Source: Oculina patagonica (lineage: Eukaryota). From it: a DNA stretch of 64,000 bases. Positions 3,601 through 46,200 of the stretch are shown in pieces (within the stretch, counting starts at the first letter, position 1; every line of letters begins with the position of its first letter). The stretch lies in assembly GCF_052425735.1 (NCBI RefSeq), contig NC_135767.1:21328001-21392000 (forward strand). Direction: 5' to 3'. A program made the position numbers and the translations under genes. Under the pieces are notes generated by a model. The model did no database searches. It saw only the letters and a program-made list of their open reading frames with translations, and was not told the origin of the DNA.

Positions 3601-6600
3601 TTGCCAAAAACGCATCAGCTTACTGTGTACAAGTATGGTGACGTGCAAATGTATGCATAAGTAAAAACTGACACCTTTTTCGTGCACCAAGAGAACAAGA
3701 GATCACCCGGTCTTGATTCCTGTTTGAAATCCATTTTATTTAGTAAAATGTGTGGTCATACTACCCATAGTACTTCCAAAATTTGTTGTTATTTAGTACA
3801 ATGAAATGAACTTTTCTTTTTTAGAGGATAAACCCATGCCAGTTGCTAACTACCTGGAGTGTGGCAGTGAGTTGAAGATTAAGGTCGACCTGGCTTTTCC
3901 GCTAAATGCTTCAGAAGAAGACATAAAGGCAACAGAAACAACTCCAATAGATGAGGTATGATGTTTAATTTACGCACACTCAGTATATTACTCTTGCGTG
4001 AAGTCCGGTTTTTTTCTAATAGCTCGTTAAACCAAAACGAAAGTGAGGGTCCTGAAGTTAGGCCATAAAATCCCATTCCCAGCGTATTGTTTTCCCGATT
4101 TTCCAAATCCCAGTCCCAGTTCTATTGTTTATTTGTTAGTGATTCTCAGTCCCATGACCCAATTCCTATTTTCCCAGTGAAAATTTGCCCAAATCCCAGT
4201 TCCCATTTTACCCCTTCAGGACCCTCTTAAGTTAGCACTCTCTCGACAACCACCACAAACGAAATAAACGCATTGAAACAATCAAAACTCGAACCGACAT
4301 GTGCAATGTGCAATGTGCAACCCTCGCCAAGCGAGCTATACAAACGCCGGAAAACGGCCATCGGTCCTGGCGAACAGGCAATCCGCTTTCCATTCTTTTC
4401 GTATTGATGGAAGACAGACGCGATTTATTCCTTGACATTTTTTAACCTTCATGTTTCATTTTTCCACAGTGTCCATTCGGTCGTGTTATCTACGTATTTG
4501 AATACAAGAATGCTCCTTTTCTCCGCCAACTTCAGTCTGAGATTACGGCCGTGAATGCTGAGGCACTGGAACTAGACACGTTACCGCAGCACGTGATTGA
4601 GGCTGCTCTGTCAACCTACAAATTGTCAAAGTAAGTACGAATGGAAAGTTCTTCAATAGCTTCTGAACATTAAAACCATCGTGAACACAGAACGAAATCA
4701 TAACCGCCTCAAATAGTGCGGTGAAACAATCAGAAGTTGATACATAAACATGCTACCAGTGCGAAGCGCGGGAGAACATGTAGCTTGAATAAAACGCGGG
4801 AAACGTGTACCGATGCCGAGCGCGGACAAGTGAGGAATTGTTCCCAAGCGAGGAAAAACTCACCGCAGGCTAGGTGCTTAGCGGTGGAAAATCGCACCGT
4901 AGTTACATGTAAAATTACGATTGATTTATGCTTTAAATCTCATTGACCGAAATCGCAGCAAGAACGGAGCGTCTTCTCTTTTTAATGATATACAGTTGGT
5001 AAATGCTTTGGAAATCGATAGATAAGAAAACGCGAACTGATAGTTTTCGACGTCAACAAAATGCTACAAAAAAGGAGTAAAGCTGTTTCCACGAATAAGG
5101 ACTGAAGCGTCCATAAGTTCTTTTGGAATTCCAGATTAAAAATATCGGTGCAAATGTTATTTAATTTTTATTTTCATTTATTCAGAGATCAAAGAAAGAA
5201 CAAGAAACTGGACATCATTACAGGATTTCAGGTCGGACTTTCAGCTTCAATATTGTAACAGTTACACCTTCTTGTTAGTTTGTTATGAAAAGTCTTTCCA
5301 CGTACAACTTCTTTCTTGATCTTTCGTTCTGTTTGTTTATCAGGTTCTTGATGGCCAGTATCACGTGTTTGTGTTAGAAGGCCTGGGCGCGAAGGGCATC
5401 AAAAGACTCTGGGAAAAACTACCCAGACCACAGGAGGAAGGTATGATCTTAGAGTCATCGAGTGGGTAAAGAAATAGTTAATGTTCTCAGTGTTGTAGTA
5501 AAGTTTTTGCGCAAAATTGTTAGTAAAACTGTACGAACATTTTCCACAGTGCATGATTGTTTCAGTTTTTGTGTCTGATTCGAAGGGGAGAATTGAAATC
5601 CCCAAATCGGAAAATCAAGAACTTTTAACCAGTAGCAGAAAAATCGCGTTTTATTTTTGTTTTTAATTGTCCAAAAAGATGGCATCCTTGCTTACAAACG
5701 AAACATCTGGCTGTCTCGTAAGATGCTCGACAGGGCAACCCGTTATTCGAGGCGGCTAGCTGAGTCAGTCAGTCAGTCAGTCACTCACTCATTCACTCAG
5801 TCAGTCAGTCAGTCAAATATAACCAACCTATCAATCAGTCAATCAATCGGACGGTTTGTCAGTCAGTCAGTCAGTCAGTCAGTCAGTCAGTCAGTCAGTC
5901 AGTCAGTCAGTCAGTCAGTCAGTCAGTCAGTCAGACAGTTAGTCCAATAGCATTCTTTATACATTGTATAACAGCAAGGACAACAAACAGGTGTTGCATA
6001 GCATTGCATTACTTGTAACCATTTGTTATTTACTGAATCTTATTTGTTTTGTTTGCTCTCAACCCTTCAGATATCACCAAGTTTAATGTTCTCTACAACT
6101 CGGACCTGAGGTTTAATGAGCGTTTGTATGCGTCGCTCGATGTGGACTTGTGCCGAGTCAGACTTCACGAGCCACTGGAGGTTATAGTCCAGAATCCATT
6201 GCTGTACGTTAGAGACCTCGTACCTAAACCTTGCTTTGACGCGCTGGCGAAACTGGACCAGGTGTGAAACTTGAATGTTTGCTGGACGATACATGTAATT
6301 CGTTAGCGTGGTATTTTATTTTGGTCTACTCTAAATTTGGGTTCAGTGCTGTTAGAGTAAAGGAGTAAAATTGTGAGGGAAACAAAACCTACGCAAAATT
6401 TGAAAAAAAAAATAACATAAAATTATGGGACAGGTCATTGTCATGGCTTTCCAGGTGGCAATCCTCCCCTAACCTCCCCCCTCTCCCCTTCCGCCTTTCT
6501 AAATCCCTCCCCGAAAAGTTGCATAGCGGTTAGTTTGACGGTTAGATTTCACTCATTGAACAACTGAAAGTCCAACAAAGTCCTCCCTTCTGCAGTAAAG

Positions 6601-9600
6601 ATAACCTTCATTTGACAGTTGACTATTTAATTTTAATTCATTTATGCTTTACACGGAAAGTAATTCCCTTACTGTGCGTGGAAGGTACGGCGTCATTTTT
6701 GGAAACTAGATACCCCCAAAGATTTTCTTCAATAGCCCTTTCTCGCTTGAAAATTTTGCCAGAGTTTATTTTAATTATTTTGTTTTTAATAAGTTCTCCT
6801 TACTCGTTTTATTCAGATGTTGAAAGTGACAAAACTCCGCGAAGTGACTCGTAACGACTTGTTCCCATCCGCTGACATGGTCATCTCCATGAGCCGCGAA
6901 TTTGGAGTACCGCTGACCGCTGAAGATTTCGGAGGTGAGTTATACATTAGTAACCAGGCCGTTACGACCATTTGTCGTCCTCACCCTGCCCCCTACCGTA
7001 GCCTACCCCCACCCAGAACCCCCTGTCTTGGCTGCAGTTTGACAACCAACAAAGACGATTGAAGCAGTTCTTAGCTTTTTAGGGCAGAAAATTTAATGTA
7101 GTTTCTGTGCCCTCTGTTATGGAAAACTCAGGCTTTAACTGAGGGCGACAGGTAGGATATTTGTTATTTGACAACGAATCCTGCTCTAATCAGTGAGCGT
7201 TTTTCCTTGAATACTTTACTCAATCTTTCCTGAATCTTCCATTTTCCAGATCTTCTTTATCTTGCTTCTGTGCTAGTTTCCTCTTGGATCTTGTGGAATA
7301 CACTGTACTTTGCAAATTGTGAGGTATATTTTCACGTGGAATCCTTTCTTCTTTCAACTTACACTATTGTCTGGAGGATTCTGTTGAGGTCTGTAGTGTT
7401 TGGTGGCTTTTGTCTACGTGAGTAGTGCAACACCACGTACTTTGTCAAGTTGCGTTAGCTTTCGTCACCTTCCTGCTTGACGCTGGTTTAATAGTAAGAC
7501 TTGTTCAGATCTGTAGGTTTTGGGGAAAAACACTTACATTGTAAGTGACCACCATGAGCGTGCTTTTGGCTGTTCCTGCTCTTCTCAGTCTCTCAAGACC
7601 TTCGTGCTTGTTGTATACGATACTCTTGGGTTTCTTGATATTTAGTACCTTATCTGTGTAAAGCTTTTAAATGAGGTGCTTCGTCTATTCAGTTTCTGGC
7701 ATCTTAGATCTCATCACCTTAGTGTTTCTACTGCTTGAGGTTCTTCTCGCAGTACTAGTGTTTTCTACGGACCTTCTGGTGCTTCCAGGTACTTTGGGTA
7801 GAAGTACAATCTACTTTTTTCGGCGTGAAACAACAACAACAACAACAATATTTAGTGCACTCTTGTCCTTACAAAAATTATTAATACAAAAAGTAATTAA
7901 AATACAGTTTGAATCTTTCGACATATGCATCATCAAGATTTCAGTTCTTGAAAGGTCAGTAACAGATCAGACAGGCTACTTTTTATCATTAACATTCTTC
8001 TGAAAATTTCTTAAAGGAATTTCTAGTCTATTCCTAGAATCTCGTTCTATTGTTAGCTATTCTCATTTCCTTATGGTTTTCTTTCATTTGCTGATTACTT
8101 TCTAAAACATGATACCATTGTTACTGGGTTATCTTTCATCAAAGTGTGATTGACTTTGAGTTTCTATTCTTTGCTGATTCGTTCGTTCAATAAGCACCAT
8201 AAATAATCTTCATCTTACTTTTTCTGTTCTCTCCCGAACTGATGCAAAAAAAAAACCGCTTCCACAAGCCACTTAAAATGGAAGAACTGTATATAACTAC
8301 CCATTTTTCATGTGATAACTCAGAAAACTGTTGACGCTCCGCCTTGCTCTGTTTTAACCAAGAATTCTTTCTGCTTTCTGTTTATCTTCTTAAAGGTCGT
8401 TTTATTGTGAATCGTGGCCTTTTTTAACATTCTAACTGTCTATCTTTTTTATGGTGCTTGTTGGTGTTTGTTTATTCGTTTTTATGTTGGAGTATTTTCA
8501 TTTTTCACGTCTTGATTACGTTTTTTCTTTTCTTTAGAACTGGAATCCAGCAGTGGCTCCGAAAAGGAAGAGGCTGGCACGGGTAACCTACTGGAGGAGC
8601 CTAGACCCAGGACCACGCGGCCATGGACGCCCTTGTCACTTTTCAACTCAGATTATGTCGCGATGCTCAAAGAACGAGAACAGACCCTTATACAACACGA
8701 CTTCATCAAAGAGAACATTGTAAGTGAAATACATTTTGATCATAATGTATACTTTTCAAGCACTCTTGAAAGTGTGAATTTGCTTGCATATTCAAACTGG
8801 TTTTGACTAGTAAGTGGCAACATGTGACTTTATGTATTTGTATTACAGCAAGGCGCCCATGGGACCACTTTATCACACTTCGTGAGAAATCCAATCAGAA
8901 GTCCTGCCAGCGATCCACGGTGATTGGAAAACGACGAAAGAGTGTTAAAGTGGCCGGGCGCCGCTGTAAGCCAAGGCCCTAATAAAATTTCTTATTTTTC
9001 TACGAAGAATACAATAAGGAAGCCAAGTTACTTATCACTTTTTAAATGTTTTAATTTCAGTTAAGGACACGGACAACAGAACCGAAGAGAAGACCACAAA
9101 CCATTGCCGTGGACATTACTGAACTTCATCAGCAAACTGCACACAACTATAGCATACAGACATTAAACTCTACTGAGCTGGCGAAAGAGAAGCTTAGACA
9201 AGTTTTAGCAAAGGTATGTGCTTTTAGAAAGCCCCCTTGTGGTCTCCACGAAATGTTTTTACTTCGTGTACGATGCGAAACTCGCGCCTTATCTGAAAAT
9301 ACTCTTACGCCCGCTTCACATGTGAAGCAAAGGCGGGAATTTCATGGCATGCGTCATCAGAGTCAAAAGCTGATTGGCTGAGCGTTAATACCAGACGGTG
9401 AGACCACTCATATCACGTTCATTTGAATGGCTTCCGTAATTACAGGTGACACCTGAGTCAAGCGTAAAGAGAATTCGTAGGTAGCAAAATTAACCTTTCA
9501 ACTGTTATTGTTCATTTTTTTTTTAGGATGAAGATCGTCGTTTTACTTACTGTCCTCAGTACAACTCGGCCACGGTTCTCCCCATCCATCCAGAGACTGT

Positions 9601-12600
9601 AAAGAAACAAGATCTCATGGACTCTAAAGAATTGTGGAGAACTGATAAAGGATTTATTTTCCCTGGAAAGAAGACCTCTTTAGTGTCAAACGTACATCCT
9701 AAGAAACCAGACTCCGCTCGGGTGGACGAACTTGAAAAGGTACCTGGATAGATAGCTAGAAACAAGTCTTTTCGTAACAACGATGAAGTAAACAAAAAGT
9801 TGAACCAGTGTAACAGTTCAGAGGTTTAACAGAACATGCAGAGGTTTAAAAACACCGTATTTTCATTGTCAAATTACCTGTGAAATTACCCGTCGCGTCG
9901 GTTTTTGTTAGAAATCTGCCTAGAAAATTTATTTTATAACTTGTGCTTAGTCGTTCTTTCATTTCTTTGCAGCCGTGGAAGGAGAACATTCTCCATGCAA
10001 ACATCTTGAAACCAACTGTAAATAGGTAAGCTTGTGCATTGTGTAACGATTCATGCCGCCTATCTCCTAAATTCGGTTCTTTTTTTCTTTTCTTTTTTTT
10101 TAACGCCATCAGAGAGTAGAATTTGTAGGGATGACTCCTACCTACTGATTGCCAGACGTAGCTTTATGGTGTGACGTATATGACGTATTACCCGGTTAAC
10201 CAATCAGAACAAACGAGTTTTCTCAGCCAATCAGGTGCAAAATCAAAACCAACCGCGAATTGGGTTCTCAAGTTTTCCCGCACTCGCTTTGCATCGGTTG
10301 CGCAGTGTCATTGCGAGCTCTACCAATAATAAATGCAATGTAGCCTAGATTTTCCAGGTTTCCTTTTTGTAAATCCTCCTCAATCTTTCTCATTGTTAAC
10401 CCTCCTTGTTCGGTTTTGCGGGATTAGAATTACCTCTTAGGTGTACATTTTGTATTTCTACCTAAATAAAGTATTATTTAACTATACATTCGATTTGAAA
10501 GTAATTTTGTATATCATAGAAAATAGCTTCTTTGAATTTAAGGGGACTACGTCACGGGGATTCGCAATTTTTGATCCTGTCTGAAATTTTAATTAGTGGT
10601 GGCAACTAACCTAATAACATTATTTTTGAACATCTAAAGAAATTATACCTTATAATTGCGGAAGAATCAGCTACGCTATCAATATCGATCGAAGACGCGG
10701 GAACACTGAACGTGCAACTTTCTCCGTTCCACCGAACCATCCGCAGCCAAGACGCATGCTTATACAGTTCAGTGCTCTATATAGCATAAAGTGGACTTAT
10801 TTTTGGCGCACATATTATTTTCGTTCAGAATCCGTGACAAAACCCAATGCAAGATGTTCTAACCCAACAGGGAAAACTTCCGTGGGATACCGGGACGCCG
10901 ACTAAACCGTTTCCATCCGAACCATCCGCAGCCATAGACGCATGCTTATTAACAGTTTCGTGCTCTATATAGCAATTGTTAATAAAAATGGACTTTATTT
11001 TTAGGTGCTGCAACATAAATGTTAATATTTGTCGGTTCAAAAATCAGTAAAATCCGTGTCATACCCTATATGCAATGTGTTGATGTTGTTTTCTTAACCC
11101 AACAGGGAAAACTTTCCGTGGGATTACAGGGACGCCGACTTAAACTTGCTTTCTGTTCCACCTCCGTTCTTCGATAAAAACCCAGTGCTGTCTGTTCACG
11201 CCGCCGGTGACACAAAAGAACAAGAAGAAACTGAAGCGGCAGAGAGACACACTCGTCAATGGCAGGAAAGAATTGTTGTGGACGATACAATTTTCCGCAC
11301 GCATCGTTGTTTAACGGAAACAGAACTCAGGCACCGAGGTCGAAAAGCGTCAAATCAGCTCGCAAAGCTAGAAGGACTTCTTAAAAACAACCCGAAAAAA
11401 TTCTCACTTTCGAGAGCTGGACTAACTGTTGAAGAAATCCCGCCGTTGGGTGTGGTCGTTAATCCGAACGTCGATACACCCGCAAGGAAAACTGGGAAAT
11501 TAGTTCCAATCGCAAGGGATCACAAGGAGCAGGGACAATGGGGATTTTATCCGGGACCTTATGAGAAGGAGGGCTGGCTTCTAGAGAAGAATAAGGTGCC
11601 AATACCTGATCAGGAGCATGAGAAGTTTAGGAGCCTCAAGGGACACGATTTCAGGTACTTTGGTTAAAATGTTGTTGATGATTATCGCATGTATAGGTAA
11701 ACAGAGGGCGTCATTAAAGTGTCTACCTAACGTCGAGCAGTCTGCAGTAGTTTCTGAGATAGGGGAAGCCATACGAGCTTAGTGGCATCAGGCCGGAGGA
11801 AGGAGAAGCGAGGAGAGCTACTTCCCCGGAGGAGCAAGTCCACGCAGGGTACCCCCGGAGAGCGCCGGACCCAAACACCTGGGTGGAGAGAGGCAGGAGA
11901 GAAAGTGTCTGCCCAAGAACACAACGCAGCGCCCCGGCCGGCCCGAACCCGGCCGCTGACCGGGCGGCGCACTAACCATAGGCCACCGCGCCTCCCACAG
12001 TAGTTTTTTAACCGCCGAGACTGATTCAAAAAGCTGACAGTTTGATCGCTTCAGCCCTTTGTCCACGACTACCGGCTGGCAGATGCCCGAAACGCCAGCA
12101 TTTTGAGCTTTTCACCGCGGTTTTTAAACCATTAAGAAATTTAAAACATTTCCCGTGCTTTTACTGAGTAATCGAAAAACGGGTTGAGTTTTGGAAGAGC
12201 TGGAAATAGTGTAGATAAGGATCACGAGCCGAAAGTGACCAGTGTTTCCACGGTTTTTCGAGTTCTCCCATAATTTCTTCGAGTGTTTCTGTTATTCTGT
12301 AGAAACATTCAGTGGACAAAGAAAGTGTCACAGCTTTGGGTTTTCCAAAACTTTTTCATATGGCAAGCGATCGGTAATGGGGTTTTCTCAGTTCGTAGCT
12401 TTACGAGTTTTCTTTAACTATAGAAACACCATAGAGGACAAAATGATTTATATTTCGGTTAGAAAATATTACTCATCAAGTTTTATCTGTTTCTGTAGAG
12501 ATCGAGACTGATATATAGAATCTCGGCTTTTGGCCAATCAGAGCGCGCTTATTTAGCCTGCGTAGCAGGCGCCTGTGCTTTTTTAGTTTTTGGGAAATGC

Positions 12601-12942
12601 GATAGGCGCGAGATCGCGAAACGGCCACGCGAAGAAAAGAGAAAAGGGAGGCCTTCTTTCTTTTTCCCTCGCGTGGCCGTCTCGCGCCTTTCGCATTTCC
12701 CAAATGCGCGCCCAAAAAATACACAGGCGCCTGCCACGCAGACTAGCGCTGTTTTTAAGCCAGACAACCATTGAGAGTACGCGTTATTTATTATAATAAC
12801 AATTTTAACAATATCTCTTTTCTTTCTATGCACCAGGTTATACTACAATGACAAAGACGTCCTCTGTCGCCGGCCTATTGAACCTTTACAAGATGAAGAA
12901 AGAGACAACCATCTTTTTCGTGTTGCAGACATTTGCAGCTGA
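646..12942 (+). CDS. CFAP92: CFAP92/KIAA1257(FLJ43738)-like cilia- and flagella-associated protein; 5'-partial, 15 exons in window (about 932 aa)
   Basis: GT-AG exons in continuous frame: 646-955, 1932-2206, 2895-3107, 3825-3955, 4470-4630, 5186-5231, 5344-5440, 6071-6261, 6817-6934, 8538-8719, 9061-9213, 9527-9739, 9973-10025, 11106-11654, 12837-12942 (TGA). Peptides resemble what I recall of CFAP92/FLJ43738: LQGPHFQIEVHDRD, CPFGRVIY, ITGFQVLDG, VLYNSDLRFNERLY, DLFPSADMVISMSREFGVP, HNYSIQTLNSTELAK, PWKENILHA. The first exon opens in phase 1, so the start lies upstream of it, probably outside the window. Confidence 0.8.
1089..1600 (+). mobile_element. Old SINE copy interrupted by a Harbinger-like MITE (1122-1364)
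   Basis: SINE head and body homologous to the 28930 copy, with CpG decay. The insert has ggcc(c/g)(g/a)gttgtt TIRs and a CTG TSD (1119-1121 and 1365-1367). Confidence 0.75.
1647..1863. mobile_element. MITE with gaggccttccaaggg TIR (related element at about 297-505)
   Basis: 15-bp inverted ends and internal cgaca repeats. Confidence 0.7.
2637..2864. mobile_element. TA-flanked MITE
   Basis: Perfect 20-bp TIR ccttattgttacttattttc and a TA TSD. Confidence 0.8.
5761..5945 (+). repeat. (AGTC)n microsatellite
   Basis: Long tetranucleotide run that gives a spurious SQSV ORF. Confidence 0.95.
10542..11067. mobile_element. Degenerate TTAA MITE containing a local duplication
   Basis: Left end TTAA-ggggactacgtcacgg; right end aatccgtgtcataccct. 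Confidence 0.55.
11761..12001 (-). mobile_element. SINE copy with many single-base deletions
   Basis: The reverse complement aligns to the 28930 SINE over its whole length with many 1-3 nt gaps. Confidence 0.85.
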
Positions 12943-14451
12943 CGGGCGCTGCTAAAGCATCCTCATTTTTCAATTACCTCTGTGTACGGCGAAAATGGCT
13001 CTGACATTTCAGTAGCGGAGTTGTTTCTCACTACGCCGCGCTATAGGAGAACTGTTTCCCTTGCGAAGAGTTTATAGATATCATAAATCGTTTATAACAG
13101 ACTATATCACAGAAACGTTTGGAATGTTTTTCATAAATTTATTTTAAATTATTTCATATGTACAAAAGAAAAGCTCTTCTCCATTTTACTAGCGGTAATG
13201 CAATTACATGTACAGCTACTTATATCGGATAAAAACATCGCCTTGGTTTTAAATATGCATTTACGTATTTTGCAAAATTTTCAAATAGGTTTAAAGGCCA
13301 GAACAAAAAAGATCCGGCCGCTTTTCACCAAGGTTACCTAATAAAATATACCTTTTGAGAAATCTTTTCCGTCTCGTTTATTTAGTATATAAAGTATTTT
13401 CAATTTAAATTTCCCCCTTTCCCCTGTTCTCCTTTTGGATAATGTTTTTGAAACCCATAATCACTATTAGAAAAAAAAAATGTTACTAACTCCACTGCAA
13501 ACTGTTGCATCGATGAACTTCCGGAGACCAAAATTGTTCTTAACAAAATTGTGAGGGAAGTGTTGTGAGTTGCGCACGAGTTTTGGTGATTCTCGTACCC
13601 AGGACCCTTTGTTGTGAAACTGGATTTTTCCGTGGGCAATCTTTAAATATAATTTCAAAATTATAAGTCTCAATGCAGTTTACTATTTCATAACAAATTG
13701 ACGGTAAATTTATGGCGAAAAAGCAAACGTACTCAAAGATATACAAAAAAATTTTAAGTTGTATGCATGATGGCCTATTGAATTTAATTTAATTTTATAT
13801 CTGGATTTATTGTAATGCCATGAAAATGAATGTTAGAAAATCTATGGTACAATTCTTACTTTAGGCCTTTGTCCTGTGATGAAGTAACTTAAACCTGTGT
13901 ACAGTAAAACTGAAACAGTTCTTCTTCTTTTTTTTTTTTTTTTTTTGCCCCTTTTCTTTTCTTTTTTTTTCTTTTTTTTCCTTTTCCGTGTCCAACCCAG
14001 TTCAAAAGCTGAATACCATAGTAACATTTTGTGAATTGTTACTGTTTCAGAATTGTTGCCACAAAAACACCTTCGAATTATGAAACTTTTTTCTAGCCCA
14101 TGAATCTCTTACATTACCTTCTTATTGAAATTTTGTAAATGATGAACATATGACTGGCGTTAAAATCGAAAAAAAAAAATGCTATCTACACTTTAAGTTC
14201 CTTACGACATTTTGAAAAATTGCGCTTAACTAACATCACAAGTTTAACTTGTTGATCTCGTCTACTGTTTCTATTTGCATCGTCGCAATCCTGAGATAAG
14301 ATTTTCGGTGACAATCGTTGACACTTCGGGAATGTTCGGCCATTCGGTCTTCTAAGAAACACTAGCCGCCAGCTTCACTTTTGCCGCGATGCCTCAGTAT
14401 TATGTCATTATTATCTGCGATATTGCACCCTGGTTTTATCTTGCTCGGGAT

Positions 14452-17400
14452 CTACTTCATACTCAGCGCTTTGTTGTTTAACACAACAACATAGTCTACT
14501 GAAAAACGATTTCTTCTCGGCCCGAGCGCGCGCCTTCTCTGGTACTCCAGTTCCGGGCTGTACCTATCGCTATTTCTGAAATCCCTTCGTTGTCCCTTTT
14601 TAGACCTCGCTGTTCTTCTTCGCTTCGCCTCTCTCATAATCTCGTTCTTTTTCCTCAGGAGTGTTCCTGTACTGGTCAGTAGATCAGGACCTTCAGCCGT
14701 CCTCGAGTCTGGTTGTGTAGGCGATGGACTCCCACCAGCGTCTTTCAAATCGACATCACTAAACGCACTATTCACACCATATCCACCCATTTCTACATCT
14801 ACAGCTCTTTCACTATAAAACGGAAAATCTGTCATGGTCCCCACCTCTGTAGTCGATTTTTCAGTCGCCGCCGCAACTGCTGCTGCTGGCTTCTCCTTTT
14901 GTTTCGTCAAAGTGAGGTATTGAATCTCATTTTCTTGCTCTCTACAAGTCTCCTCTATTCGGCGTTGCTTGTTGAGCAGCGCTTTCTCTCGTAGCTGCGA
15001 GCTTTCCAAACACGCCTCAAAATCTTTTTCTCTTTCAAGCGCATCGCTCAGTTCATCCAGAGCTTCTGTCAAGTCGCTCTCCAAAATTAAAATTTTTTGC
15101 TTGAAATCCTCAGTTACTCTCTGTGATATAAAAAAGATATAAATCAGGGGGGTAGGAACAGTATACAGGGGACACTGGGATACAGTATTTTTACACTAGA
15201 GTGTAGGGTGAAAGATACTGTGACATCAAAAAAGATATAAATCAGAATGGTGTCAAAAAGTAGGTCCGCTTTGCGTGCATAGTTGATTAGAAGGTTTAAG
15301 AAGTTTCTTGCTTTTAGAATGAACCTACGAAACATTTAGAGACAATATCCTCTATAAATTCCAGATTCTCAAAATGGACATTAAAAGACGTGTATGGCTG
15401 TCAGGAAAATTAGTCTATTGTAAGTTTGAGAGTGATACAAGAAGGGTTTTATTTATCGTTTCCAGCCATTGCTCACTACGTGATTTAAAATGGCGGATAG
15501 CGTTATCAGAGGTCACAGATAAGAAGACGAAGCAAATCGGAACTAGATATTGTAAATCGGAAACGACCCGACAGTTTAAATATCCCGAATTGTTCCGATG
15601 TACTCCGAGTTTGCTGTTATGTTGTTGTTGTTCTTGTGCTGCTATTTTTGTTGTTTGTTTGTTTGTTTTGATGTCTTGAAGTGTAAACTCAACTGCAGAG
15701 AATTATATATTTTCTTACCTCCCTTTCTTTCTGTTCCATGTAAAGTCTAAGTTTCAAATCGAAGTTCTCTTTCTTTAGCTCTTGAATTAACTGCAAGAAT
15801 CGGAGATTAAAATTCAGTGACGGAGTTATAGCCAGGATTCCATTTAGATTCGCGCTAACGTTTCTAGCATTGCAACTGTCAGAGCCGGTTACCTTAAGGG
15901 AGCGGTCTTGTCAGTCTAACTACTCGAAATCTGGAATGACAACCATAGCCGCCCACATTTCTCCTGGCATTAAAAGACTCGAGACTAACTGAAAAGTTAT
16001 ATTACTCCGTCTCTTCGTTACTTTTGCCATTACCTTCTTTGTATTTGCTTTTTATTTAAATGTCCCTTCACTTTTTAGAAGTTTATATTTCGCCAAATAT
16101 GATGCATATCGGCTCATGCCTTGACAAATCCGTGACACAGTCCCTTTAATTGCAGATAAGTAGCTTACTGTAATCAAAACAAGGGTTATAAAGTATAGTT
16201 AAGATGGTTTCCCCCAACGAGAGGAAGTACGACCTCAGCGTGAAACAAGCAAGCACGGACCCGAGATGAGGCCGGGGGCGCGAGGACCGAGGGGGGCGAC
16301 AATGCAAAGACAGAAGGCTGAGGCGCCGGCTCGAATTTCAGCGGAATCCGTCTAAGTCCCAAGAAGTGAGACATTTTCACGCCAAATAATGCCACGATTT
16401 TAAAACTCAAAAATGCGTCAAAAAAATCGGAAAAAGTTTTCCAGATTGTTCGATTATGTTCGTAAATTAAACCTGGCGTAATAAAATATGAAGATACAGC
16501 AATAATTTTTTGAACACAATTTCTAAAATGTTTGAATTGATGACTCTTTTCCTTCCAGTAATATATTTTTAGTTTATGTTTCTACATGAAGGAAACACAC
16601 GATTGCTGTTGCGATTTCAAAGAATCTCAACAATGTTATAATTGCGTACTTTAACTGCATATTTAAATAAATTATAAAAATAATATGGCAACAAGTTTCT
16701 GAAAAGCCACTTTACGTATTAAGATGGTTAACTTTATAAATGTTTTAAATTGCTTTTAAAGTAAAACAATATTGTTTACTGAAACTTTAAAACAAATGTT
16801 TTTTTTTGTATTACTATAAATCAGTTGTTACTCTCATAACAAAAGTTGATTGGTTTACATTCATGTTGCACGTCACGCGAAATTTTAAAAGATATATATA
16901 ATATAATTTCCTCAAACACATAGCAATTTTCTGAAAAATTTAGCAGTTTGATATAAACACTTACCGTTTCATGGTCCTTGATCGTGTGACCACCAGGCGA
17001 GGCAACTGGAAAAACAACAACAAAATCCCTACATGAGCAATATTAGACATAAACTCAATTTACACCTATAAGAAAAAAATAGTTGCAACAGCGGTGAACC
17101 ACAAACTGAATAAAGATAAGATTTTTAAATTATTGTTTTAAATTTTTTAGCGAGTTGTTTAGCAGCTGTAGTAAAATTTATTTTTTTATTTATCTTTTTT
17201 CAAGATGTTTTTGATGAGTTTTGTAGAGTTTTATAAACAAAGTAAAACGTCACAATACGCCGACACGGCCATGTTTTTACACGAATTTCGCGTGCCGGAA
17301 ACTATGACGGAATTTAAGCACGGAACTTACAAAAGAAGCTTCCACGAGATGATTTTCGTTCGGTATTCTTTCGACTATCCTTCTAAGATATTAAATTATT

Positions 17401-18822
17401 AAACATCGATATAAAATATTGATTTGTTGCTTAACCTACCGCTCAAGGCTTCGAGCTGCTCAAGGCTCCTATAACTTTGCATCTTGGCTTTGTCTAATTC
17501 CTCTGTATAAGAAAAAACAAAATAATAAATAAGTAAAAGGCTAGCATTACTGCGTAACGTAAGAATTAAATTTTAAGCGAAAGCTAGTGACTTGATCTTT
17601 GTATGAAATAACAATATCACTCATAAATGAGAATGACTGAGGCATTGTTAAGGTCGGATGAATTTAAACCTGGTATTGATCGCGAGTAATTTCCCGCAAA
17701 ATATCTTAAATGGCAGCAAAATGGCAGACGCTACCTTATCACTAAATGTAGCGGGCTTAAGGTCGACGCAGAGATCGGATATTTCATTAAACAATCGGCT
17801 TACCTACGTAAAAAGTGTGATCAGTCTCAGTGCTCAACTTGGCCTGGTTGATTTTTGAATAAATGTTTGATAAATGAGTTTGTTAATTCGCGTTTACAAT
17901 CCAATTCTTTGGCCCTACGGCTATGGATGGATTCCCTGTCGATTGAAAGCGCTATCTGGTCTCCAATTTCACTTCAAGGATGTAAATCTTAATCCTGGTT
18001 ACATGATAACATCGGTGAAAAATAAATACATCGCTGAATCTTCAAATATGTTATAGATTCGAAACATCCATAGCTGAAAGCAATAAATTGCCCTGGGTTA
18101 TTTTCTTTTCCGCACGGTGATTCTACCAATGGCGTATGTCTTTCGCAAATTAATAATAATGACGAGTAAATAGCTGTCTTTATTTTGCACAGGTGGGTCT
18201 CTGAAACTCTAGTACCTTCTTTTATTTGCAAAGCTCGACTTATAACAACATTCAAGCGAATCTGGTGACCTTTATATCAACAAAATGCTCGTTGAATCAT
18301 CTTTCCATTTTTGCGAGGCAGTTCCCGTGACGAACCTATTTTTAGAAGAATAGAGCACGATAATGGCTTTCTTAGCCTATTAGAGAGTGAAAATGGTTGT
18401 TATAATCGGTGGCTTTACAAACATAAAGTTCACTTCGAGTCAAATCTTGTCGTTTTGAAAGAAAACGGGGGATGTCTGAAACATGGCATTGTACGTCAAC
18501 ATAAGTGAGATGTAGAAATATATTGTTTTCTTTTAACCCATAAAACTGGCAAAAGTTCCTTTCTCAAACATTGTTTTCTTCAAATAGATAAATTTGAAAA
18601 GCAAGATAGATGAGATTCGTTACCAACCAAGGATTACTAAAATGACTATATACTTCACGTGAAAAAGCCTCTTTGAAATAGTAAGATTCGTTGTATTGTA
18701 AACTTCTACACTGAAGAATTTTCCGTAATGATAGTGTCGATCTGCTGTATAAATGTTGGTTTTAAGAGTTGGTCGACAAGTTTCGATGCCAAATGAAACC
18801 ACGTACCTTTATGGTCCCCCAT
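14452..18822 (-). CDS. Short CM1 (centrosomin motif 1 / gamma-TuNA) coiled-coil protein, CDK5RAP2/myomegalin/Cnn-related, 286 aa, 5 coding exons
   Basis: Minus-strand exons 18822-18807 (gccATGG start), 17502-17440, 17005-16965, 15790-15719 and 15120-14452. All are GT-AG and phase-compatible (861 nt). The product begins MGDHKEELDKAKMQSYRSLEQLEALSVASPGGHTIKDHETLIQELKKENFDLKLRLYMEQKERERVTEDFKQKILILESDL. The CM1 consensus (MKDFENQITELKKENFNLKLRIYF in CDK5RAP2) is clearly recognisable. The 16-nt first coding exon is the least certain part. Confidence 0.8.
15898..16145. mobile_element. Deleted copy of the 43505 MITE family
   Basis: Ends in aaatccgtgacacagtccct-TTAA; internal sequence is similar to 43740-43900. 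Confidence 0.65.
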
Positions 18823-20719
18823 GGCAGATTGTCAGTCACAAAACGACAGAGTCAATCGTTATACTTCCAAATCTAACAAGGATTCGCTTCTGCCAAAGCT
18901 AACACAAATCTGTCTCTAAAATGATATTGGTTCCCTTCTTTGGCGTCGAGCAAGTTTCTAGCACGTAAATGGGGGGTTTAAGTTCAGCGACGATATTGTA
19001 ATTTTAAATTTAATTTATTCGTTTTCGCAAAAAAGGAAGTTTATACGTAGAACAATAGCGGAATATTATAGCATCGGGTATATTTACTACTTCGTCATTT
19101 TAGAAGACAAAAATACATAATTAAAAAGGAAATTATGAGAGTGATGTAATTTGACGAATTTAGACAAAAATTATCTATCACTTTCGACATATTATTGGCC
19201 GACAAACAAAAAATACAATATATATTCGATCGTTAGCATATATTGCTACGAAATTCCTTGAAAGTAATATCAAAATTTGAAAGAAGCTACTTAAAATTAT
19301 ATTTATATACGATGAGCAAGCCATTCTTTAAAAAGTAGTATTTACTTCGTTTCTCATAGCTAGAGCTTTTTTAACATTAAAATGCACTAATCCCGGCTAC
19401 CTATACTTATCTTGGAAGTGCCGTGTTAAGATACACATTTGTGTGCATGCATCAGCCATTTTGCGGTTAAAATTTCTAATCATGCACGTGTTGTACAAAA
19501 ATAACCAACTTTCCTACCGCGACCTACAGTTAATTATATTCTATTTTTACTTATGGTCTATATAACTGACGCGCAGTTATAAATCTGGACGGACCATACC
19601 CTAATGAGTCCCTAATGTCTTTTATTTTCGAAGAGTTTATTTTCGATAATTTCACGAGCCAAAATTAAAAGCGCAAAAGTTTGTCCTTGAAATGAAAGGT
19701 AAATATTCCCTGAGTGACTCTTCGCGATACTCAAAAAATACAAAACTGTAATAACGGGACCGATTTCGTGAACTTGAGGCGAATTTCTAAACCTCAACAA
19801 AAATAATAAAGAGCCGAGGGAAAGTTTGACTTCTGTTAGCCTGTATTGAGCGTAATAAAGAAAAGGTATTTTTCCATTCAAGCATATGGGCTCACAAATA
19901 TATTGTACTAATTTTCGAATTCAGATACAAAAACATCCCATAGTTGACATTTTATATCGCACAATGAAGAGGTCTTTTATCAGCAATATTTACCCGAAAC
20001 AAACCTGGTCTGTTGCCGTGAATTTGCATATGAGTTTGCTGATAATTTGTTTTTAGTATTGATAGCGCGTTGAATAGGGGAAACCAGGACTTGAATGACT
20101 GTAAAAGATATTGTGATCTAGTATAAACTTGGCAAGTTTTGCTGTCTACGTGTAGACGAGAAGGCTTTTTAAGAGAGCACGTTCACTATAGGTCTTGATT
20201 GCATGTCATTTAAAATTCGACACATTCGAAACGGAGCCATCGAAAGCATAATTACTAACAACGAATCGGCGATAGAGCCAGGTTTAACTCACACGCGTAA
20301 ATTTACTTATAAACTGGATAAAAGATAGGGAGGAAACGCGTTCGGGCGTTATAGCCTTCGCGTTAGAACCACTCAAGCGAAACGAGAAAACACGGGCACG
20401 CGCTTAAGACAGGCGTAATTTCGCGTAGAAGGATTGTTAAACAAGTGAACTTGGCAAGCTCCCAGTTGGTGAGGTTCTTGTTTTCTTTTAAATTTGAATT
20501 TTGAATTAAAAGCATCAGGTAGATTTTCGACAATATCGGTCTGGAAATTTAAGATCTGCATGCTGAATCCAAAAATGTTTTCTGTACATTGTATTAGCAC
20601 AGCTCGTCCGCTCCATCGCATTTCCTCAAAATAAACTCCGTATCGAATTTTCATTTTAAACGATTGTAGACAGGTTATCTTTCGTCAAGGAAAATAATTA
20701 GAAAATCGAGTTTTCTTAC

Positions 20720-43200: not shown

Positions 43201-46200
43201 ATCAAGAATTCATCAAAGCAAGCCGTAAGTATCACATTGTAAATAACACTGTAAAATTCTGAAAATAAGCCCCAGGCTTGTAATTTCTGAATGTCCCTTT
43301 TAATAAAGGGGGTTTTGTCATGGATTTTACCAGATTTTTGAACAGCCAAAATTTAACAAGCGTCTTTGGCTGCAGATGGCTCGGATGGAAATGGATTGCA
43401 ACTTGAAAAATTAAGGCTTAACTTTTCAAGTTGTTTCCACGCACCTTCCAAAAAGAAAACGAAGAAGGTTATATCTTTTTTCCTTTATGTTTTTCATTGG
43501 TTAAAGGGACTGTGTCACGGCTGATTTAAGTTTATTTTATTACGTTTTGCCAAATACTCGATATGAAATTTAATTTTTGCAAAGAAATTACTTCTATGGG
43601 TCTAATTGACAAATCCATAGCTTCATTGTAACTAAATGTGTCTCCCTGGCGTTATAATTTAAAGTTACAAGCAGACGAGATTAACTTTGAAAACTGGTCC
43701 GCCGGACAATATTTCAAAAACCCATATCGCAATCCGTTTCAATCTTCGTCGCTATTGGCCATCCGTTACTTCTTTTGTATTTGCTGTGTTATTAAAATGT
43801 TCCTTCACTGTTTTAAGATGTTATTTTATATATTTAAACGAATTTGATGGTCATTTTCTATGCCTAAGTTTGGCTAAAATCCGTGACACAGTCCCTTTAA
43901 GTCGCCCACCACTTATTTCAGAAAAGTTTAGACCAAAAATCTGCCGTCCCCGTGACGTGTCTCCTTTAACTAATCCGTCTCAATTGACCAATCCATTTTG
44001 CTTGGTTTCCACAGTGTCTAGCTCAGTAGAGGATGGTTTGAAGGAATTATCAGCTGTTCTGAATACCTTGCCTGAGTCTGTTGTTCGCGTTATGGAGTAC
44101 CTTTTCTCTTTCCTGAGTTTGTAAGTACTCACAGTATAAGGTTAAGGTTAAAGACNNNNNNNNNNNNNNNNNNNNNNNNNNNNNNNNNNNNNNNNNNNNN
44201 NNNNNNNNNNNNNNNNNNNNNNNNNNNNNNNNNNNNNNNNNNNNNNNNNNNNNNNNNNNNNNNNNNNNNNNNNNNNNNNNNNNNNNNNNNNNNNNNNNNN
44301 NNNNNNNNNNNNNNNNNNNNNNNNNNNNNNNNNNNNNNNNNNNNNNNNNNNNNNNNNNNNNNNNNNNNNNNNNNNNNNNNNNNNNNNNNNNNNNNNNNNN
44401 NNNNNNNNNNAGATATATCCTATTTGTCGTCCTTGTGTGTAAAGTATCGCTGAATTTTTAAGTTTTATGCAATTTTTTTTTGCGAGCCCGTAGGAAGAGT
44501 CAAAATGGTCGTTCAAATTAATACAGCGACCATATACCCGAATTTATTATAAAGTGATTTCTTATCCCAAACGCTTACTGAACAGTTTTTGGCGCTCTCG
44601 CGTGGTGAGAACAAATAAGAGGCGTACAGAAACCTTATAAAATCGGTCTCCAGAGTACACACGTGGTGAGATTTTGTACTCACTTCGCGCGTTATTTGTA
44701 CTCTACTTAGCGGAGCTGATTTACAAAAGAAAAAATGATTTACATTTATACACTTCTAATCTGTGTTCTGCGCAGGGTGGCTGAACACAGCGATGCCAAC
44801 AAGATGGATGCTCACAATCTCGCGGTAGTATTTGGTCCGACGTTATTACGGATCCCGTCTGAGCAGGACATGATAGCTTACCAGAGTCAAGTGAATGGTA
44901 TGATGGAGCTGCTGATTAAACACTGTGGCGAGGTCTTCCCTGGCTCAGGAGAACCGCTACATACACGCCTCTCAGAGACTGAGGAAAGCGACAGTGAGGA
45001 AGGTATGTGTATTGAACAGCTACAGGGTTCGTACAGGTCATGAAAAACCTGGAAAATCATGAAATTTTAAAATGTCATTCTCAAGGCCTGGAAAGTCATG
45101 GAATTTAAGTGTGGTTCATGGAAAGTGGTATTGATTATACAAAAAAATTAGGCAGGTTTTTTTTGTGCAGAAAAAGGTAAAAACGCACCCGAAGTCAAGA
45201 TAATTTTTGAACATTACCAAGAAACGTGGTCAAATTTTGGCCATAGAAAACTTTGAAAAGTCATCGAAAAGATCATGTAAAGTCATGGAGTTTCAAAAGC
45301 TCAAAAAAGTACGAACCCTGAGTCCTTTGGATTTGCTTCTCTCATTCGACCCCAGCAATCTTAGCCTCGATTTCTGAACCTCCCGATTTTTCGAAATAAC
45401 TTTGTTTCACTTGGAAATTGGAGATATCAGGATTATACTGTGAATATCTCTTGAATGTAGAGATTCCGTATAGTACGTACTTTCTGCTTAACGAAAGTAC
45501 GACTTTGCAACCACGCACATATGTTGGATTGCATTTCAGCGACAACAGGCCTGCAGCTTAAATTGAAGAACACAGTGTATTATGTTAGGCCTCAACCAAC
45601 ATAAGCAAACTACGGCTGCCGTATCTTTGTGTTGATCAAAAATGCAAGGCTAATCAATCAGCTAAAAATGTTTTTTAATTTGATTCAATTTTAAAATTAG
45701 ACAAACCTAACCTTAATCAGGGGCTTTCTAGTCTTTTTAGCCCCCCGAAGAAGGAATCTAATTTTGTCCCACAGAGATGTTGGGCCAAAAAGAAATCGAA
45801 AAGAACGCATTTTCAGTTTAATTTTGTTTATTTTTCAGACTTTGAGCCAAGAGATGCAGAAGCACTGTTTGACTACTCAGCTCGATCATCAAAGGAGCTC
45901 TCCTTCAAAAAAGGCGACATCATCCGGGTATTCAAAAGGTTTAACAATGACTGGTGGGATGGGACAATCAATGGAACAGACGGCTTTGTTCCCGCCAAGT
46001 ACATCCGCCTGCCTACTGACGATGATGTCGATATTACTGACGGTGAAGGAAACATTTCCATCCCTGGAGAGCCGTCACCCTCTCCCAAGGTTTCCTCCAG
46101 CAGAGCAGATAGACCTAAGGACTTTAACGTGCCTCCAAGGATCCCTAAGAGAGAAGGCTCGCTCAGGGGGAGGGATAGTATTCCTTCGCCTACTTTTGAA

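Follow-up and report, generated by a model that had tools for sequence, protein, structure and literature searches.

A short, spliced CM1 gene of the coral Oculina patagonica belongs to an uncharacterised family of CM1 proteins present in all cnidarian classes sampled

The CM1 motif is a universal handle for switching on microtubule nucleation, and the field still asks what directs it to non-centrosomal sites. Here we describe a small minus-strand gene in a 64,000-nucleotide stretch of the Oculina patagonica genome (NC_135767.1, positions 21,328,001 to 21,392,000; hereafter the window, which lies on C10), whose product appears to consist of a CM1 coiled coil and a short tail. An initial annotation, made from the sequence of the window, had proposed such a gene, and we examined its splicing, its relatives, its predicted structure and its reading frame.

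Results

A spliced five-exon gene lies on the minus strand

The gene comprises five exons, all bounded by AG and GT, that total 861 nt and encode 286 amino acids. To this region (13100-19000) we placed contigs of four public sequencing runs, two of them RNA-like (X1 and X2) and two DNA-like (X15 and X16), and we compared it with L011, a spliced transcript contig from a more distant coral that encodes the orthologue P0012. The exons are as follows.

18822-18807, minus strand: exon 1, with its ATG at 18822 and 16 nt of coding sequence followed by a GT donor; joint 17502/18807 in X1 and X2
17502-17440, minus strand: exon 2, 63 nt, with AG/GT flanks; joints 17005/17440 and 17502/18807
17005-16965, minus strand: exon 3, 41 nt, ending ..HTIKDHET, the start of CM1; L011 transcript edge at 16965
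15790-15719, minus strand: exon 4, 72 nt, CM1 core LIQELKKENFDLKLRLYMEQKERE with the Phe equivalent to F75 of CDK5RAP2; joints on both sides
15120-14452, minus strand: exon 5, coding part as assembled, with coiled coil, disordered linker, basic helix and frameshifted end; stop codon 14454-14452
22516-22495, minus strand: alternative first exon MESLGLL, found by six-frame search, 22 nt, in the same phase and with a GT donor after it

Contigs of X1 and X2 contain the joints 15120/15719, 15790/16965, 17005/17440 and 17502/18807, which are exactly the predicted edges, while the introns are covered by the DNA-like runs X15 and X16. The four tiny exons of 16, 63, 41 and 72 nt are thus joined in frame to the open reading frame (ORF) at 14452 through GT..AG introns, as the initial annotation had proposed. 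The exon 3/4 and 4/5 edges are identical in L011, and in the peptide the exon 3/4 joint reads ..SPGGHTIKDHET followed directly by LIQELKKENFDLKLRLYMEQKERE. These results confirm that the locus is a real, spliced and expressed five-exon gene.

The gene had been thought hidden; it is in fact already represented in GenBank by KAL9960809.1 (P0030), an Oculina patagonica "hypothetical protein" of 288 amino acids, and its orthologues are predicted in GenBank, RefSeq and UniProt. P0030 and the window model agree at every one of the 281 residues that exons 2-5 encode. The KAL9960809.1 model starts with the MESLGLL exon, which lies 3.7 kb upstream of the RNA-supported exon 1 and beyond the region covered by the placed contigs. 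In the RNA-like contigs the first exon is the one at 18822-18807, and its 5' untranslated region (UTR) extends to at least 18883, as an X1 contig spans 18807-18883. The N-terminus of the orthologue P0016, MGDSKE, resembles that encoded by exon 1. Several N-terminal isoforms are likewise found for the Acropora and Stylophora orthologues.

At the 3' end of intron 4 (window 15120-15240, minus strand), the acceptor region (..ctgatttatatctttttt.atgtcacag) is present in two copies separated by about 100 nt. At this acceptor the X15 and X1 contigs omit 97-98 nt, which marks an indel polymorphism of a short tandem duplication.

The product carries a CM1 core with the essential phenylalanine

Pfam defines CM1 as the family Cnn_1N (PF07989), with a curated gathering cut-off of 28.5 bits. 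P0030 scored above this cut-off (30.8 bits, E 3.3e-7), as the initial annotation had anticipated, and 20 of 20 aligned orthologues matched the same family. Exon 4 by itself reached 25.5 bits, and exon 5 by itself matched no Pfam family. In a six-frame scan of the genome with PF07989, the window exon ranked seventh with 22.2 bits amid many chance matches to coiled coils (~20 bits), and the unspliced signal alone is therefore unconvincing.

A phmmer search of the PDB gave a single meaningful match, the CDK5RAP2 CM1 chain 8rx1_G (E 6.9e-5). This alignment sets TIKDHETLIQELKKENFDLKLRLYM of the window opposite NMKDFENQITELKKENFNLKLRIYF of CDK5RAP2, with KD.E..I.ELKKENF.LKLR.Y conserved, and this core is invariant in the cnidarian family described below. 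F75 of CDK5RAP2 is essential for binding and activating the gamma-tubulin ring complex, or gamma-TuRC (bioRxiv 10.1101/2023.12.14.571518). The alignment shows that the essential Phe is retained, at residue 50 of the 286-aa model and residue 52 of P0030, and the neighbouring positions noted in the initial annotation are kept as well. On this sequence evidence, we regard the window product as a genuine member of the CM1 family.

It could be argued that the protein is a coiled coil that merely resembles CM1 and has a partner other than gamma-TuRC. Its Pfam score lies near the cut-off, many coiled-coil ORFs reach ~20 bits in the genome scan, and automatic annotation has named its orthologues ELKS-like, SUN2 or INCENP-like. 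However, the LKKENFDLKLRL block is invariant in 20 of 20 orthologues, which is not the behaviour of a generic coiled coil, and the gene shares an intron position with a canonical-type paralogue (see below). We thus regard a chance resemblance as most improbable.

A canonical-type CM1 gene on another chromosome shares an intron position

The six-frame scan also uncovered a stronger CM1 exon (46.4 bits) on a different chromosome, C1, and the window gene is therefore separate from the canonical-type one, as had been proposed. We read the C1 gene over its two CM1 exons, where it has the CDK5RAP2-like form of CM1.

G000:C1:32505764-32505871 (L001 1507-1614), plus strand: canonical-type CM1 exon, reading QISELKKENFGLKLRIYFLEERV..
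L001, ending at 347: preceding C1 exon, ..TMKDYEY followed by gt

In both the window gene and the C1 gene, a phase-0 intron interrupts the sequence exactly 9 codons ahead of the Phe. This was the intron that the initial annotation had singled out for comparison, and its shared position indicates that the two genes are old duplicates and that neither is a retrocopy.

Comparison of exon 5 with genomic contigs of a close relative (L009 and L010) gave a dS of 0.146 and a dN of 0.013 (dN/dS 0.087), with 21 of 27 differences on third codon positions. Against the more distant transcript L011, pN was 0.15 and pS 0.80 (saturated), and between corals and Nematostella the block from KD.ETLIQELKKENFDLKLRLYMEQKERER is invariant. 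These patterns show that the gene is under strong purifying selection.

A decaying partial duplicate, for which a dN/dS near 1 or absence from related species would have spoken, is ruled out for the gene as a whole by the dN/dS of 0.087 and by its deep conservation, with orthologues found in relatives.

Short orthologues occur from stony corals to Hydra

Orthologues of 260-495 amino acids were found in stony corals, Nematostella, octocorals, a scyphozoan, Clytia and Hydra, which bears out the expectation of short orthologues in other cnidarians.

Stony corals: Stylophora XP_022806921.1; Acropora XP_015774625-8
Nematostella: XP_001624862.1 (UniProt A7SU50), 382 amino acids
Octocorals: Dendronephthya, Paramuricea and Xenia
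Medusozoans: the scyphozoan Rhopilema; the hydrozoans Clytia and Hydra (LOC101237013)

The classes in which we sampled the family are thus Hexacorallia, Octocorallia, Scyphozoa and Hydrozoa. When 1.84 billion representatives were searched exhaustively with a profile, there were 44 matches, all cnidarian-like or CM1 fragments, and no bilaterian orthologue; a search of named proteins limited to 210-668 amino acids also returned none from bilaterians. Long CDK5RAP2-type proteins were likewise not retrieved, so the sensitivity of these searches for CM1-only matches is limited. At the search depth used, the family thus appears in cnidarians only. A literature search found no paper on a short cnidarian CM1 family.

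Several orthologues carry misleading automatic RefSeq names (SUN domain-containing protein 2, ELKS/Rab6-interacting/CAST family member 1-like and inner centromere protein A-like). The misnamed proteins P0104, P0025 and P0137 are the Hydra, Acropora and Clytia orthologues, respectively, and all are short CM1 proteins.

The canonical architecture, a long scaffold with a C-terminal CM2 domain, is absent from the window gene. Its stop codon comes early, after 286 codons as assembled or 299 in the conserved frame discussed below; the ends of the orthologues are conserved; and in the placed contigs of the four runs (13100-19000) no joint leads from exon 5 to a downstream exon. The neighbouring gene lies only ~1.5 kb away, in agreement with the initial view of a short protein that lacks CM2 and has little room for further exons. 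The short CM1 family is an uncharacterised architectural variant of CM1 proteins that is present in all cnidarian classes sampled.

CM1 is predicted to begin a long, parallel dimeric helix

AlphaFold2, run on a 20-sequence alignment, predicted a single uninterrupted helix over residues 35-136, with a block-mean predicted local distance difference test score (pLDDT) of 96-98 over residues 41-130. Disorder follows, and then helices at 208-229 and 250-264, the latter directly before the cysteine cluster of the tail. When two copies of residues 24-140 were modelled together, the dimer score was 0.58 versus 0.01 for the best control; among proteins with solved structures, 21 of 30 that pair two copies of one chain attained this mark, and 0 of 23 that are single chains did so. 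Contact agreement between runs was at least 92%, and partner pLDDT was at least 85. In the modelled dimer the two chains run parallel and in register, with Phe52 of P0030 lying outside the interface residues, a position that fits an outward Phe facing GCP2. Together, the models place CM1 at the start of a helix of about 100 residues in the N-terminal third of the protein, which is predicted to form a parallel dimer.

A conserved C-terminal tail is shifted out of frame in the assembly

The orthologues end in a conserved motif. Every hexacoral orthologue ends in ..ARARAEKKSFFS(R/K)LCCCVKQQSAEYEVD.., while the Nematostella tail reads ..KKDKKSALSKFLCCCG.., octocoral tails read ..KKNKKYNFWGCVRAR.. 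and medusozoan tails read ..KKKKKG(I/L)MK(V/I)FKLC(T/G)GKSG... What marks the family is thus a basic run that leads into hydrophobic or aromatic residues, with at least one Cys after these (CCC in hexacorals). The motif is preceded by a conserved basic helix, LLRKKNEI.REAKRRRTARSKK; in the model these parts correspond to helices 208-229 and 250-264, and the motif itself falls on or beside predicted short helices. A search of the ESM Atlas with the tail gave no match. The initial annotation had described the tail as disordered and basic; the tail is more than that, as it carries a conserved basic, hydrophobic and Cys motif that resembles the missing targeting module and that could not be seen because it is out of frame in this assembly.

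14541-14540, minus strand: 2-nt CA insertion relative to L009, L010 and L011, ..GAGTAC[CA]GAGAAG..
14411-14539, minus strand: conserved tail, intact but out of frame, ..EKARARAEKKSFFSRLCCCVKQQSAEYEVD..; stop codon 14413-14411

The CA insertion shifts the frame of the last ~40 codons relative to all orthologues. Past it, the assembled ORF runs through 29 unrelated codons, from QRRRALGP to ..ALSMK, to the stop at 14452, and KAL9960809.1 ends in the same frameshift product. The conserved frame would instead give 299 amino acids, with the stop at 14413-14411. Of the 286-aa protein first proposed, then, the first 257 codons stand and the last 29 residues are the product of the frameshift.

Beyond the insertion, L009 differs from the window at 7 sites; every one is a third codon position when read in the conserved frame, and 6 of the changes are synonymous; if changes were spread evenly over codon positions, the chance of this would be ~(1/3)^7, or about 0.0005. 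This pattern indicates that the conserved frame has been under selection for essentially all of the divergence, and the insertion is thus either very recent, or heterozygous, or an error. The CA is absent from X15, X2, L009 and L010. The X16 and X1 contigs span 14540 without showing its omission, each with two unplaced gap letters. When runs were searched for 9 words sampled from 14478-14600, 5 of the 9 turned up in X1 and in eight more runs, and 4 of the 9 in others, which fits carriage of the CA by the former; no indexed run contained all 9 words, and none matched the window fully. Weighing these mixed observations, we lean towards a real allele rather than an assembly error. If the insertion is real, the window copy would yield a tail-less and probably mis-targeted protein.

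One reading of the insertion is that the gene is becoming a pseudogene in this genome, having lost its tail while the family remains functional elsewhere. The insertion is present both in the assembly and in its GenBank protein, no omission at 14540 is seen in X16 and X1, and the extra sampled word in X1 and eight further runs means that the allele may exist in other samples. However, the other 257 codons are intact, dN/dS is 0.087, and the changes after the insertion fall on third positions in 7 of 7 cases. Furthermore, the CA is missing from X15, X2, L009 and L010, and at this site the window has no exact match in any indexed run. We therefore consider ongoing loss of the gene very unlikely.

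The neighbourhood of the gene

6154-12939, plus strand: convergent multi-exon neighbour, recovered as eight tblastn segments that cover most of a 493-aa C-terminal product of L011

The last coding exon of this neighbour ends near 12939, which leaves ~1.5 kb of intergenic and UTR space before the stop codon of the CM1 gene, the distance initially given. The neighbour matched no Pfam family and gave no usable Atlas match, and its initial label, CFAP92, was not confirmed.

Window 13842-14034 is purine-rich and of low complexity, with poly-Lys/Glu ORFs on both strands; it is presumed to be 3' UTR or intergenic, and reads are cut there. A run of 255 N at window 44156-44410 marks a gap or masked sequence.

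Discussion

A putative gamma-TuRC activator with its own address

With moderate confidence, we interpret the gene as the Oculina copy of a cnidarian-wide family of short CM1 proteins, in which a CM1 dimer acts on gamma-TuRC and the tail serves as a targeting module. CM1 of CDK5RAP2 engages GCP2 and MZT2, favouring ring closure and nucleation (bioRxiv 10.1101/2023.12.14.571518), and the coral dimer would do the same. The conserved C-terminal module would stand in for CM2 as the address. A polybasic stretch beside hydrophobic residues and Cys is the usual electrostatic and S-acyl membrane anchor of palmitoylated proteins, and the tail would most plausibly be such a polybasic, S-acylated anchor. 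A protein of this kind could build a non-centrosomal, membrane-associated nucleation site on the principle of CM1 plus an address label.

Alternatively, the protein may be a soluble regulator without an address, either a free cytoplasmic activator or a competitor that blocks a long CDK5RAP2-type protein, with a tail that is regulatory (autoinhibition or calmodulin binding). Its CM1 core is complete, the basic amphipathic helices 208-229 and 250-264 could be protein-binding sites, and the tail-less form in this assembly would be just such a protein. CDK5RAP2 itself has an autoinhibitory segment directly after its activating part (bioRxiv 10.1101/2023.12.14.571518). However, the basic run, hydrophobic residues and invariant Cys have been kept from Hydra to corals, which suits an anchor better than a linker. 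Furthermore, free CM1 would nucleate microtubules everywhere, as known from overexpression of gamma-TuNA, and cells normally avoid this. A soluble regulator thus strikes us as unlikely, and we retain the reading of an addressed CM1 dimer.

Several points weigh against this reading. P0030 exceeds the Pfam cut-off by just ~2 bits, and the high dimer score may stem from the model's memory of solved CM1 coiled coils. That X1 and X2 are RNA is a guess; moreover, all four runs are ~3% diverged from the window and come from relatives or other populations, so splicing is shown for close relatives of the sequenced animal rather than for that animal. Because the assembly has the tail out of frame, the window copy could make no use of it, provided that the insertion is real. 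That the Cys motif is S-acylated is our guess from its sequence alone, and calmodulin, tubulin or acidic lipids are alternative ligands for the basic amphipathic stretch. Finally, gamma-TuRC binding, activation rather than inhibition, the location in the cell and any role at a non-centrosomal microtubule-organizing centre (MTOC) are all putative.

A bolder extension would see the family as an invention of cnidarians: a minimal gamma-TuRC activator, tethered by a lipid, that would turn a membrane into an MTOC, for which the post-Golgi nematocyst vesicle would be the obvious candidate. We know of no explanation so far for the molecular origin of the nematocyst microtubule basket. The growing nematocyst tube is surrounded by this basket of microtubules (PMC10014300), which gives cnidarians at least one prominent membrane-borne array that is not centrosomal. 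A link between the short CM1 protein and the basket is speculation, and we give the proposal little credence. If true, a 300-residue protein would connect a re-addressed CM1 module with how the stinging organelle arose.

The family provides a natural minimal protein, CM1 plus a short tail, that is kept beside a canonical-type CM1 gene. It thus offers a compact system, relevant to microtubule-nucleation and cnidarian cell biologists, in which to study the action of a bare CM1 dimer in vivo and the way in which a tail of ~40 residues can address it, and the gene is present in the genetically tractable Nematostella, Hydra and Clytia. The analysis also bears on annotation, as orthologue names are misleading and the Oculina model ends in a frameshift product.

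Comparison with known CM1 systems

The coral protein shares with CDK5RAP2, myomegalin and Drosophila Cnn the CM1 core with its essential Phe, and the model predicts that it may also share their parallel dimeric coiled coil. In contrast to these proteins of 1000-2000 or more amino acids, it has only ~290-300, lacks both the long scaffold and CM2, and belongs to a family that adds a tail of its own (basic run, hydrophobic residues and cysteine).

In the fungal CM1 proteins Mto1, Spc110 and Spc72, a coiled coil likewise has CM1 at its N-terminal end. Mto1 and Spc110 are long and bring targeting domains of their own; the CM1-only proteins of Mucorales (about 160-270 amino acids) are short, like those of cnidarians. 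The fungal proteins differ in having no cnidarian tail motif and in matching over the CM1 motif only (E 1e-4 to 1e-6). P0120-P0132, from Mucor, Rhizopus and relatives, are such short proteins with a CM1 domain only, and may be an independent case of a "mini" CM1.

Another parallel is CnnT, the testis isoform of Drosophila Cnn, in which CM1 and a mitochondrial targeting domain suffice to make an MTOC (PMC6162459). CnnT keeps CM1, exchanges CM2 for another C-terminal module and needs no other parts of the pericentriolar material (PMC6162459), and by analogy the coral protein would do likewise. The C-terminal modules of the two are unrelated, and CnnT is a splice isoform of cnn, whereas the coral protein is encoded at a separate locus, on C10 and apart from the canonical-type CM1 exon on C1.

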